NCBI RefSeq assembly: GCF_001194135.2
Contig: NC_068982.1
Location: forward strand, 151,953,631-151,997,405
Direction of reading: 5' to 3'
Length of the DNA: 43,775 nt
From: Octopus bimaculoides
Taxonomy: Eukaryota
Part shown: positions 2,991-30,210 of the stretch, piece after piece
How positions within the stretch are numbered: position 1 is the first letter of the stretch
How the letters are laid out: every line of letters begins with the position of its first letter
Position numbers and translations under genes: made by a program
Notes under the pieces: model-generated
Told to the model about the DNA's origin: nothing
Databases searched by the model: none
Seen by the model: the letters and a program-made list of their open reading frames with translations, nothing else

Positions 2991-3329
2991 CACTGTGGTT
3001 GTTTGTAATAATTTTTGCGTTCTTGTCCTATTTTTTATATTCTTATATATATATATATATNNNNNNNNNNGAACGATGAAAATGAGTGCTCAATGCTGCA
3101 TTGGTGAATATAATTTCTTTATTTGTGAATTAAGGTTACCATTGGTTTCGTGTTAAAAAAGGTAGGAAAATGTCCTTAATTTTTCAAGCCGATCACATGG
3201 AGAGAGGTGTTCGCTTCCAGTTTGGAAAACACAGCATATATATGCATACATGTATATGTGTATATACATACAGATATCTATACCTATGTATCTATTTTCT
3301 ATGTATGTGTGATTGAGTGAGTGAGTGCG

Positions 3330-17797: not shown

Positions 17798-19396
17798 TCA
17801 TCATCATCATCATCATCATCATTTAACACCCATATTCCATGTTGGCATGAGTTGGATAGGTGCTGGTGAGTCTAGGAGCTGCACCACGTTCCATAGTCCG
17901 TTTTGGCTAGATTTCTAAAGCTGGCTGCTCTTCCTAATGCCAACTACTTTACAGAGTGTACCAGGCGCATTTTACATAGTACCAGTACTAGTACTTTTTA
18001 TGTGACACCAGTACTTTTTACATGGCACCAGCACCAGTACTTTTTACATGGCACCAGCACCAGTGCTTTTTATGTGACACCAGCACCAGTGGCCTGCATA
18101 GGCAAGCATTACCAGGGCGGTTTTAGGATATCGATTCTGTTTTTCTGTGATGGGCAGGTCATCTTGAGCACTGCAATGCACCACATACCTCAGTCCTTTG
18201 TCATCTTCTTTGTAAAGAAGCCCAGTATTTTGAGATCAGCTTTCAGTACCTCATCCTATGCCTTCCTGGGCATCCTCTTTAAGTTATCACCACTTCTTTA
18301 TGCAACTGTCTTCATCCATACACATTAACATAACCAAATCAGCATAGTCTTATCTCTAGCACACTGATTCTCATTCTTCTCATGCCTAACTTTTCCCTCA
18401 ATGCACTAGTGCTCTGTTGCACATGTTCACTGATATTGCACATCCAGCAGAGCATGCCAGCTTTGTTTCTCTATAGTCTTCACATGCCCTCTGCATTCTG
18501 GGCCCACATCTTACTACCATGTAGCATTGCAATCCATACACATACATCATACAGTCTTCCTTTCACTCAGAGAGAGAGAGAGAGACCTTTGGTTGTCAAC
18601 AGAAGTAAATGCTCTCTGAACGTACTCCATCCTATTCTTATTCTAGCAGTTTCACTATTGGCACATGCTCCTACACTGCAAATTAGGTTTTCTAAGAAGC
18701 AGAAATTATCTAATACTTCCAGAGCACCTCTCGAACATTTGAAGAAATCAGTTTCCCATGTATCAGTACATGGTTCCTGTACATTTTCCACACACAAACA
18801 CTACTCTCTCTGTTAACTCTCCTACTATTTCACTGCATCTCTTGTGTGGCCAAAGCTTGCACTGTGTACAACAAACAGAATGTTTTCCTACACCTTTCCA
18901 ACTCATTGAGCATGGCCATTTATCTGAAGTGGGTTGGGCCCTGTCTAATTTCTTACTAGGACCTACGTCTTTGTTAAGTTAACTTTAAGACTTTTCATTC
19001 CAGGTTTTGTTTACACACCTGAAATTTCTTTTCTAGTTCTATAACAAAATCTGTTATGAAGGCAAGATCAACAGCATATAATAGTTCCCATGGGCTTCCA
19101 GTCTTAAATTCTTCTGTTATGGCCTGGAAAATGATGATGAATAGGAGGGATTGAGGGCAGGCCCTTGGTGAACACCTAACTGTACACCAAATTTTTCACT
19201 GTACTCATTGCTAACTCTTACCTTACTAATAGCACTTCTGTACATGGCCTGTACTGCTTTCACAAACCATTTATCTATTCCTAGCTTCCTCAGAGTCCAC
19301 CATATCACAGTGCAAGGTACTCTGTCAACGGGTTTCTTCAAGTCAACAAATACAATGGATTATTCTCAGCTAAAAACTTCTCTTGCACTTGTCTGA
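17798..19396 (-). mobile_element. RTE-clade LINE, 5'-truncated, with RT remnant and (GAT)n tail
   Basis: Minus-strand RQVQEKFLA..FVDLKKPVDRVP..WWTLRKLG..KVRV..GVHQG and EVLDNFCFL..ARIRIGWSTF; (CAT)n on + at 17798-17821. Confidence 0.85.
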
Positions 19397-19610: not shown

Positions 19611-19989
19611 ATATATATATATATANNNNNNNNNNNNNNNNNNNNNNNNNNNNNNNNNNNNNNNNNNNNNNNNNNNNNNNNNNNNNNNNNNNNNNNNNNN
19701 NNNNNNNNNNNNNNNNNNNNNNNNNNNNNNNNNNNNNNNNNNNNNNNNNNNNNNNNNNNNNNNNNNNNNNNNNNNNNNNNNNNNNNNTATATATGTAGAG
19801 AGAGAGAGACAGAGAATTGTATAGGATACAATTATATATCTCTATATATGTATTTTACTATAAAGGTAAACACACAAAGGTAAAATTTTGCAGTCTATTT
19901 TCAGTTAGAGTTTACTGATGTGATTTTCAGAACAATTGTAAATCCTTTCTCATCCATTCCATCATGCCTCAATGGACACACCCACGTGC

Positions 19990-20480: not shown

Positions 20481-20740
20481 CACATGCGTGTGTTTATGGC
20501 ATGTTTTTCATTGCTAGAACACTTGGTCATAAATTAACAGAATTATCTAAACAGCAAAATAAGATTATTACTTTTACAACTTTTACTTCTGAATCAGAAA
20601 AATTTTTGTTAAGTAATTTTCCTGAACAAAATCTCTAGTTTTTATATATGTTATTTTAATATTAAGGTGCTTAATTCACCTTACTTCATATGTCAATTTA
20701 TTCATTGTATTTTATTGTTTTCTTTCTTCTTTTTATCCAG

Positions 20741-20908
20741 GTGTCATCACAAATGATTTTGCAGACGAAATCATATTAGATCCAAAACTCATAGCCAAAC
20801 ATTATATAAGAACATGGTTTTTCTTGGACCTCATAAGCTCAATTCCAATGGACTATATCTTTCTCATGTGGGACACTGAGGCTAACTTCAATCAATTGTT
20901 CCATGCAG
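20741..20908 (+). CDS. HCN: HCN (Ih) hyperpolarization-activated cyclic nucleotide-gated channel, internal coding exon (S2-S3 linker, S3, S3-S4 linker); phase 1 at both ends
   Basis: Pyrimidine tract plus CAG acceptor at 20740 and CAG|GTACGC donor. Translation (G)VITNDFADEIILDPKLIAKHYIRTWFFLDLISSIPMDYIFLMWDTEANFNQLFHA(G) matches the HCN signature ILDPK.I...Y...WF..D.ISSIP.DYIFL. Not in the supplied ORF track. Confidence 0.96.
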
Positions 20909-20941
20909 GTACGCGAATGGATGTATCCCAATACTGGCAAG
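20909..20941 (+). CDS. HCN: Candidate in-frame exon extension through an alternative 5' splice site (+11 aa, GTRMDVSQYWQ)
   Basis: 33 nt, stop-free, ending at CAAG|GTGATC in the same phase; composition turns AT-rich soon after. Confidence 0.5.
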
Positions 20942-21059
20942 GTGATCATTCTCGTTTTTTTAATTAATATTTCATTCCAAATTTCACTATAAAAAGTCAT
21001 ATAACTTCCTCATTTCACTTAATTTTTAAAATTCTTCTTTATATGTATTGTTTTTTAAA

Positions 21060-21840
21060 CACTCTCATGGCCATCATCAACACCACCATCATTATTATAA
21101 TCCTCTTTGTTGTCAGAAACCACATCATTAGCATTATCAATATCAGCATCAGCATTATAATCATTAACATCATCATTATCATCTTCACCAACATCATCAT
21201 CATTATTACAGTCATCTTTCATCGTTGTTGGCTTTAATCATCATTAGCATTAGCAAGATCATTGTCATTGTCATCATCATTATCATCATCTTCACCATTA
21301 TCACTGTCATTGAAATCATAAAATTGCTAACTTTGATCTATTTTTCATTAGTATTACATGACTGAACATTAATTATCATCATTTCTGACCTTTAAAATAT
21401 TAACAACAAAAACAGAAACAAAACTGAGACAACATTAGTAAAAAAAAAAACAACTGCTAAAATAACAACAACAACAACAACAACCATAATAATATTATTA
21501 ATATTTTGTTTATTATCATTATCATCATCCTAGTAATCATCTTAATTACCCTTGTCACTTATTTGATTCTCATGAACTGTTATTTCTACAATTATTGACA
21601 CTCATTGTTATTTACCATTATTCATCACCATCATCACCACCATCACAAACATCAGCAACAGCAGCATCACCATCTTCCTAATTTCCATCATTATTACCAA
21701 CATGACCATCATCACCATTATCACCACAACTACCATGATGATAATGATAATCATCATCATATTCATGATCACCATCATCATCACCATCATCATGATCACA
21801 GTCATTATCATCATCATTATCATTACAGCTACCACCAGTA
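21060..21840. repeat. Cryptic (ATC/CAT)n low-complexity region
   Basis: Degenerate trinucleotide blocks near 21060-21310 and 21620-21840. Confidence 0.9.
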
Positions 21841-23439: not shown

Positions 23440-23880
23440 TCAGATAAAATGTTTTGCAGAATTTGTTCTGGTTGTAAACAGTCTAAATTCAAATTCTGTC
23501 AAAGTTGGTTTTGCCTTTCATCCTTGTGGGATGACAGAATAAAGCACAAATCAGGTACTAGGGATTAATATTAATCAAGTAACTGCTCTTCCCAAAATTT
23601 CAGAGTAGTGGATTGGCAGATTCAGGAAGATGTCAGAATAAAATGCTTTACAGTATTTCTGTTTTTACCTTTTTTTTTTTTTCCTTAACATTCTGAGTTG
23701 AAATCCTCCAGATGTCAACTTTACTTTTCGTCTCTCTTGGGTTAATAAAATAAATTATCATTCAAGTTCTAGAGGCAATGCAATTGCTTTACCTCCCCCC
23801 CCCCCCNNNNNNNNNNNNNNNNCCCACCACCACTCTCCAATACTGCTGGCTTTGTGTCCCAAAAATTGAAACTATTATTA
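23440..23880 (+). mobile_element. Two tandem degenerate tRNA-derived SINE copies (Deu/Nin-like central domain)
   Basis: B-box-like AATTCAAATTC / GAGTTGAAATCC followed by GCCTTTCATCC-type sequence; same family as 39168-39374. Confidence 0.6.
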
Positions 23881-26769: not shown

Positions 26770-27260
26770 TCATCATCCTCGTCATCATCATCATCATCAT
26801 TTAACGTCCATGTTCATGCTGGCATGGGTTGGACAGTTGACTGGTCTGGTACGCTGGAAGGCTGTGCCAGGATCCAGTCTGATTTGGCATTGTTTTCTAT
26901 AACTAGATGCCCTTTCTAATGCCAACCACTTCAAGAGCGTAATGGGTGCTTTTCCGTGCAACTGGCATAGGTGCCATTTTCATGACACCGGTATCTGCCA
27001 CAGCTGTGACTTTGTTCGCCTTGATGAGTTTTCTTCTCAAGCATGACATAATGCCAAAGGTCTTGGTCATTGCCTCCATGAGGCCCAACACACAAAATGA
27101 GCTTGGCTACTTTGCCTAATTGTGGCCCAATGCTCAAAAGGAACTCAGCCACCTTGCCTCCATGAGGCCCAACACTCGAAAGCAACTCAGCCACTTTGCC
27201 TCAATGAGGCCCAATGCTTGAAAGGTACTCAGTCAATTTGCCTCCATCAGTCCCAACATT
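26770..27260 (-). mobile_element. RTE-derived 3' fragment with five 42-bp tandem units at its 5' end
   Basis: (CAT)n tail on +; TGCCT anchors at 27071, 27113, 27155, 27197 and 27239. Confidence 0.8.
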
Positions 27261-27529
27261 CAAAGGTTGATTTTTTTTTTCCATATTTTTATTATGCTCA
27301 AATGACCTGATCATTGCTGACTCTGTTTTCCCTCTCATGTTCCATCTGCTCACTACAGTTTCAAGAACCTTGTACTTTAACAGTTTCTTCACCCACTTCT
27401 TGTGCATCAGTGGGGAAACATTTTCATTCCTGTCTTGGATCATTATATCTGAATATCATTGTTAATCACCACCACTTTTCGATTTACCTATAATTCAAGA
27501 CATCAGAAAGAAGTCATCAAGTGCAACTG

Positions 27530-30030: not shown

Positions 30031-30210
30031 GTGTGTGTGTNNNNNNNNNNNNNNNNNNNNNNNNNNNNNNNNNNNNNNNNNNNNNNNNNNNNNNNNNNNN
30101 NNNNNNNNNNNNNNNNNNNNNNNNNNNNNNNNNNNNNNNNNNNNNNNNNNNNNNNNNNNNNNNNNNNNNNNNNNNNNNNNNNNNNNNNNNNNNNNNNNNN
30201 NNNNNNNNNN

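Follow-up and report, generated by a model that had tools for sequence, protein, structure and literature searches.

A single exon of an HCN channel gene lies in the stretch of Octopus bimaculoides DNA analysed here (43.8 kb, hereafter the window). Translated in phase 1, the constitutive part of this exon reads (G)VITNDFADEIILDPKLIAKHYIRTWFFLDLISSIPMDYIFLMWDTEANFNQLFHA-G, ending in ...NFNQLFHA-G, and by homology it extends from the S2-S3 loop through S3 to about halfway along the S3-S4 linker. The protein encoded by this part is 97% identical to that of a cloned HCN cDNA from the squid Doryteuthis pealeii and 72-81% identical to full-length HCN proteins from Lymnaea and oyster. Together with the extension described below, it matches full-length HCN proteins that carry the domains PF08412, PF00520 and PF00027 at 72-97% identity. 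When the window exon was joined to its squid flanks and used as a query, the structures of human HCN3 and HCN1 were matched with E values of about 1e-66, the exon falling on S3 and the S3-S4 region. Neither a motif scan nor a tblastn search with the squid protein found a further HCN exon in the 43.8-kb window. Since the window thus holds a single HCN exon, the introns on either side of it must be longer than 20 kb. The features of the exon and its flanks are collected in Table 1.

Table 1. Features of the HCN exon and its intronic flanks. Positions are those of the window; a slash marks an exon-intron boundary.
Feature	Position	Strand	Description and basis
Intron 3′ end, pyrimidine-rich	20718-20740	+	acceptor AG at 20739-20740; read from the sequence
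HCN exon, constitutive part	20741-20908	+	168 nt, phase 1 at both ends; translation and homology
Donor 1, CAG/GTACGC (GTACGCGA)	20909-20914	+	use would give the short linker ...FHA-G-RALR
Alternative exon extension	20909-20941	+	33 nt; would add 11 residues (TRMDVSQYWQ-G) just before S4
Possible hairpin enclosing donor 2 (tentative)	20915-20951	+	RNAalifold and MFE folds
Conserved block TACTGGCAAG/GTGATCATTC	20932-20951	+	20 nt; nucleotide-level conservation
Donor 2, AAG/GTGATC, with intronic +1 to +10 (GTGATCATTC)	20942-20951	+	same in nine mollusc loci
Intronic stretch GATCATTC			intronic side of the conserved block around donor 2
Intron flank alignable with squid locus L014	20952-20964	+	4-nt indel; blastn and MAFFT

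The remainder of the window is marked by gaps and simple repeats. Runs of N that represent assembly gaps lie at positions 1541-1664, 3061-3070, 19626-19787, 23807-23822 and 30041-30210, one of them about 1 kb upstream of the HCN exon. A long, imperfect, ATC/ACC-rich microsatellite occupies intronic positions 21060-21830, beginning about 120 nt 3′ of donor 2, and the TRF rows for it cover 21622-21828. Tandem repeats with 42/84-nt and 26-nt units are present at 27070-27265 and 17970-18090, several di- and trinucleotide microsatellites occur elsewhere in the window, and no long open reading frame of obvious function was seen.

Two candidate 5′ splice sites follow the constitutive part of the exon. 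An earlier, sequence-only reading of this DNA had called donor 1 with the G of its GT at 20909 and donor 2 exactly 33 nt farther on, with phase preserved and no intervening stop. Both sites are present as claimed. The added stretch reads GTRMDVSQYWQ when counted from the Gly codon that is split by donor 1, and the G at 20941 forms the first base of the Gly codon that the next exon completes. Other particulars of that reading were likewise borne out. Two CpGs fall within the 33 nt, whereas the surroundings are CpG-poor (window CpG o/e 0.31, or 0.88 CpG per 100 nt), and the 168-nt constitutive exon has a single CpG. Neither donor is strong, with moderate pairing to the 5′ end of U1 that amounts in each case to 7 Watson-Crick pairs and one wobble of 11. 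The next HCN residues, RALR.., form the start of S4, an assignment with which the orthologous proteins agree, and the exon for S4 lies outside the window. We also considered a U12-type intron, and rejected removal by the minor spliceosome because neither donor 1 nor donor 2 is like the consensus /RTATCCTT.

By itself, a donor pair of this kind is not significant. The window contains 430 G/GTR sites. For 48 of these (11%), another in-frame G/GTR follows within 60 nt before any stop, and for 5 of the 430 such a second site is AG/GTR. One might therefore take the second donor for a chance in-frame GT without biological use, since roughly one site in nine shares the pattern. We regard this explanation as hardly credible because, as described below, the pair is conserved across three classes of molluscs, both a cDNA and annotated isoforms attest to its use, and the indels within the extension are exclusively in frame. 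It is conservation in other species, rather than the pattern alone, that makes the donor pair significant.

The closest comparison is with squid locus L014, where only window positions 20718-20964 align, at 89% identity, in a comparison that took in about 10 kb on the upstream side of the L014 exon and 5 kb on its downstream side. The conserved unit thus runs from position -23 at the acceptor to position +22 at donor 2, continuing past donor 1. Within the extension, the differences between the two loci are an in-frame indel of 6 nt, a single Ala/Val exchange and a single synonymous substitution. The conserved block is immediately followed by a 4-nt indel, which is not a multiple of three, and soon thereafter the similarity ends. 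The translation of L014 is 100% identical to residues 181-251 of the D. pealeii HCN cDNA (ALT57286.1 / A0A0U2UTV7), whose protein reads ...FHAGTNARMDASQYWQ-GRALRMLRLAK. Because this cDNA joins ...YWQ directly to GRALRMLR, the squid mRNA must have been spliced at the counterpart of donor 2. The cDNA is identical to the genome here, and its exon stops exactly at the donor-2 GT. The squid gene is an ortholog by both protein and DNA identity of the exon (97% and 89%), and the counterpart of the extension, TNARMDASQYWQ, is joined to GRALR. The octopus extension differs in being two codons shorter and in having Val for Ala. For D. pealeii the long form alone is on record, and this cDNA is the one cephalopod transcript that we examined.

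A broader comparison was made with the DNA of eight relative loci (L001, L002, L006, L008, L010, L011, L013 and L014), which were chosen from genomic open reading frame fragments matched in protein searches with the exon. With the window included, these nine loci represent cephalopods, gastropods and bivalves. The fragments from the relatives run in frame through donor 1, and all of them end in ...(P/S/Q)YWQGDHS. Donor 1 (CAG/GTA) is kept in nine of nine loci, as is donor 2 (AAG/GTGATCATTC), and the flanking intron is conserved along with them. The distances between the donors are 33, 39, 39, 42, 48, 39, 54, 39 and 39 nt. The open frame noted in the octopus by the sequence-only reading therefore extends to every one of these loci, with all lengths being multiples of three and with neither stops nor frameshifts. 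The residue that follows Gly at donor 1 is T, N or S among the nine loci and K in other fragments. Upstream of the 20-nt block the loci vary as coding sequence does, with indels of 3n only and with changes at third positions.

Around donor 2, conservation reaches the level of individual nucleotides. The sequence TAYTGGCAAG/GTGATCATTC is invariant in the nine loci, with one TAT for TAC as the sole variation, and apart from that substitution the 20-nt pattern is matched exactly in every mollusc locus that has the extension. At L007, a more distant relative, the block is absent both in frame and in the 10 kb downstream. None of the 23 synonymous third positions of the constitutive exon is invariant across the same nine loci. 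Given that the synonymous sites of the exon are saturated while the 10 bases past donor 2 do not change, these intronic bases must be under strong selection. Specifically, positions +5 and +6 of donor 2 deviate from the donor consensus, and the whole of +5 to +10 lacks a consensus match, yet all of these bases are invariant. This pattern suggests that a bound splicing factor or a structure sets the choice between donors, and the 20-nt block is likely to be a recognition or regulation element for donor 2. Across species, donor 1 forms 6-9 Watson-Crick pairs with U1 and donor 2 always forms 7 plus a wobble, and such similar, middling strengths fit a competition between the two sites.

If a structure is involved, it might be a hairpin that encloses donor 2, which we put forward as an idea only. 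In the predicted folds, an outer helix joins GAATGG (20915-20920) to TCATTC (20946-20951), and inside it 20924-20927 pair with 20941-20944. The 5′ arm coincides with the codons for Arg-(Met/Leu/Val)-Asp (GA-N-TGG), and its pairing with the intronic UCAUUC would place donor 2 in the stem. When nine species are considered, 79% of cells are paired compared to 31-49% in slid controls, and the pairing is absent in two of the species. With a 3′ arm that never varies, there can be no covariation.

One could go further and propose that the block at 20932-20951 is mainly an RNA element, such as an editing-site complementary sequence or some other structure, and that the reading frame is secondary. An invariant stretch of 20 nt that includes 10 intronic bases, along with the excess of predicted pairing in several species, is what this proposal would lead one to expect. 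We nonetheless consider it very unlikely. The same invariant 3′ arm rules out any covariation and two species lack the pairing, Rfam yields no match anywhere in the window, and the variation upstream of the block is of the coding type. Moreover, no exon partner for an editing duplex was found, and the squid cDNA, in addition to agreeing with the genome here, has its exon end precisely at the donor-2 GT.

Annotated transcripts of other molluscs indicate that each of the two donors is used. Queries with the exon-length protein return short genomic open reading frame fragments, whereas a representative search with a full-length query returns spliced models. These models are products of the RefSeq pipeline, and for at least nine non-cephalopod molluscs they include annotated isoforms spliced at either donor. 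Forms with and without the insert are assigned to one gene in oyster (P0361/66/70/72 with, P0373 without), Biomphalaria glabrata (P0346/P0463 with, P0462/P0467 without), Haliotis (P0482 with, P0480 without), Mizuhopecten (P0355 with, P0489 without), Pecten (P0495 with, P0357 without) and Mytilus galloprovincialis, in which isoform X3 (P0514) carries TETRLDVTPYWQ and X4 (P0513) lacks the insert. The corresponding pairs in two clams are P0359 with versus P0498 without, and P0527 with versus P0367 without. Both forms of one gene are also annotated in a second pulmonate-like snail and in two further oysters. The model for Lymnaea stagnalis has the long form only, and those for Pomacea, Littorina, Babylonia and Elysia have the short form only. 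The RefSeq molluscan sets agree with the window in where the exon ends and in having both donors, and they carry an insert that closes with (P/S/A)YWQ right before GRALR. As modelled by the pipeline, their inserts differ in length (10-17 residues) and have variable N-terminal halves.

From these comparisons, the octopus exon very probably makes both a short linker and one that is longer by 11 residues, although for cephalopods the use of donor 1 is something that we infer from sequence. The sequence-only reading had likewise proposed two isoforms, with donor 1 as the normal site and donor 2 as an extra. The first part of this proposal is well supported by orthologs, for which forms spliced at either donor are annotated. 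The second part needs qualification, because the squid cDNA uses donor 2, and the evidence favours donor 2 as a main donor rather than an occasional extra.

An explanation that dispenses with donor 1 must also be weighed. In cephalopods, donor 2 might be the sole donor, such that the 33 nt are constitutive coding sequence and the GT at 20909 is a look-alike that goes unused. The squid cDNA is of the long form, no short cephalopod transcript was seen among the sequences examined, and conservation between octopus and squid is unbroken from the acceptor to position +22 of donor 2. In addition, the GGT-ACG at donor 1 encodes Gly-Thr in both cephalopods and may be kept for coding alone. Coding would not readily account for the retention of CAG/GTA in nine molluscs while the residue after Gly varies, and short isoforms of the same gene are annotated in many gastropods and bivalves. 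Furthermore, the pairing of donor 1 with U1 equals or exceeds that of donor 2. We therefore judge it unlikely that cephalopods rely on donor 2 exclusively. Our preferred reading, which we hold with reasonable though not full confidence, is that this HCN exon has two tandem 5′ splice sites that are an old feature of molluscs, that the choice between them is probably regulated, and that the resulting channels are expected to differ in activation.

A third kind of junction is found in Haliotis, where P0350 and P0484 read FHA-DIPWRTLYL-GRALR. This arrangement looks like a 27-nt, phase-1 micro-exon that is used with donor 1. No micro-exon resembling DIPWRTLYL was found in window positions 20942-43775, which cover about 22 kb downstream of the exon.

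Outside the molluscs, the HCN proteins that we examined from flatworms, the nemertean Lineus, the brachiopod Lingula and arthropods have only HAG-RALR or its equivalent. An annotated protein from another nemertean, Tubulanus polymorphus, reads HAG-SIVHVLAGSVWQ-SRALR (L015, about 44170-44270). We rejected this insert as a homolog because it derives from a separate predicted micro-exon located 1.3 kb into the intron, and the read-through at donor 1 is unrelated to it. The junction of this micro-exon to S4 does not obviously produce the annotated residues, and it may be an artefact of the gene model. Insects have the intron of this region at an earlier point, following ...IFNQ, and several genomic open reading frames read through it in frame. 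In the arthropod genomic fragments examined (P0122, P0051, P0126 and P0130), HAG-RALR is contiguous and there is no intron at HAG/RALR. This contiguity would fit the loss of a lophotrochozoan intron together with the insert.

The position of the molluscan insert invites comparison with vertebrate channels. It maps between S3 and the first arginine of S4, immediately before RALR. In HMMER alignments to structures of human HCN1 and HCN3 (PDB 5u6o and 8inz), the S3-S4 linker of vertebrates is matched by the extension and not by the end of the constitutive exon. The aligned segments are TRMDVSQYWQG-RALR in the window, PRLDAEVYKTA-RALR in HCN3 and GMDSEVYKTA-RALR in HCN1. When molluscan extensions were anchored and scored without gaps against the HCN3 segment by using BLOSUM62, ten of twelve species gave scores of 13-18 (shuffle p <= 0.002) with 3-5 identities in 10 positions, whereas Lymnaea scored 7 and the scallop scored 0. 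The preceding segment, ANFNQLFHAG, scores about 0 against the same HCN3 residues. An origin of the insert by tandem duplication of the exon end was also considered and is unsupported, with scores of -4 to -9 for the insert against that preceding segment (p > 0.18). An AlphaFold2 model of the squid channel, built from an alignment of 27 sequences, was too poor for a structural reading (mean pLDDT 42, pTM 0.27).

This likeness suggests, as loosely as is fitting for so short a stretch, that the insert has long been coding sequence and did not originate as exonized intron. A bolder version of this idea is that the insert is the S4-proximal linker of ancestral bilaterians, homologous to (R/G)(L/M)D(A/S)EVYKTA, which molluscs switch in and out through a regulated choice of donor under the control of GUGAUCAUUC. 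Perhaps GUGAUCAUUC would exert this control via a hairpin that would hide donor 2, and the intron-less short form of arthropods could have arisen by loss of the insert segment. We consider an ancestral origin of this kind possible but rather doubtful. If true, then nature would have performed in molluscan HCN channels an on/off experiment on the very linker segment by which HCN activation voltage is set.

Regardless of where the insert came from, the consequences of two tandem donors can be outlined. Splicing at donor 2 would yield an extracellular S3-S4 linker that reads ...NFNQLFHAG-TRMDVSQYWQG-RALR, whereas splicing at donor 1 would drop 11 residues to yield ...NFNQLFHAG-RALR. The long form would hold the segment that resembles the vertebrate linker, and the short form would be like the arrangement in arthropods and flatworms. 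Which donor is taken is probably controlled by way of the invariant sequence surrounding donor 2.

Pacemaking and resting excitability are under the control of HCN channels, whose S3-S4 linker is a known lever on activation voltage. Engineered changes to the S3-S4 linker of HCN1, made by Li and colleagues, reportedly shift activation. Because of the analogy with these engineered linkers, with exon 29 of CaV1.1 and with variants of the lobster channel PIIH, the two molluscan channels would be expected to differ in the voltage range of activation, in its speed, or in both.

Each of these analogies is incomplete. Work on the S3-S4 linker of HCN1 (Tsang, Lesso & Li 2004; Lesso & Li 2003; Henrikson et al. 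2003) is cited in PMC2765624, which mentions a deletion of residues 277-279. The segment altered in those studies is reportedly GMDSEVYKTA before RALR, with which the molluscan insert aligns. Those channels are artificial vertebrate mutants, whereas the molluscan change is natural and made by splicing. For CaV1.1, the voltage dependence of activation moves by about -30 mV when the 19 residues of exon 29 are left out (PMC5330888), and there too a voltage sensor has its extracellular S3-S4 loop lengthened or shortened by splicing. CaV1.1 differs in that a cassette exon is spliced in a depolarization-activated, four-domain channel, whereas in molluscs an alternative 5′ splice site acts on a hyperpolarization-activated tetramer.

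The published analogue that is closest in kind is the Ih channel PIIH of the spiny lobster, which is also an invertebrate HCN channel with a short, alternatively spliced insert in the S3-S4 linker. According to the passage in PMC5096308 that cites Ouyang, Goeritz & Harris-Warrick 2007, the A forms carry YRDKE and Bs-I is without it. The lobster insert is distinct from the molluscan one, in that it is a 5-residue stretch that follows ...IFNK, 12 residues ahead of RALR, and has an unrelated sequence.

A full-text literature search found no paper that describes a splice choice in the S3-S4 linker of molluscan HCN channels. For relatives of the octopus, the event is already present in databases, in the form of the squid cDNA and the RefSeq isoforms, where it has gone unremarked. 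The window adds a species to this set, and the mechanism is not new. We believe that the system is worth specialist attention for its conservation in three classes, for the invariant intronic element and for the likeness of the insert to the vertebrate linker. That the splice choice has been kept in three classes of molluscs suggests that the animals require the short as well as the long linker, each probably in its own cells or states. In the neurobiology of cephalopods and other molluscs, including Aplysia, Lymnaea and squid, an expression study that relies on one cloned isoform may therefore overlook half of the channels that are natively made. For biophysics, the two forms offer naturally occurring constructs whose sole difference is the segment that aligns with the MDSEVYKTA linker of mammals.

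The models also reveal other sites of variation in the same gene. A second splice hot spot lies right after S4 (...VQQWEE/FLA...) in molluscan isoforms such as P0365, P0369, P0371, P0480 and P0497, with inserts that include LLKSKK, FDANPCMTNCGRRRKPG, VG and VSMLRGTMNMFPALRRSKFSQ, and the lobster protein P0421 has VSS at the same place. Finally, Biomphalaria and another snail show two alternative exons for S5, and the tandem presence of both exons in some models probably reflects an error of modelling.
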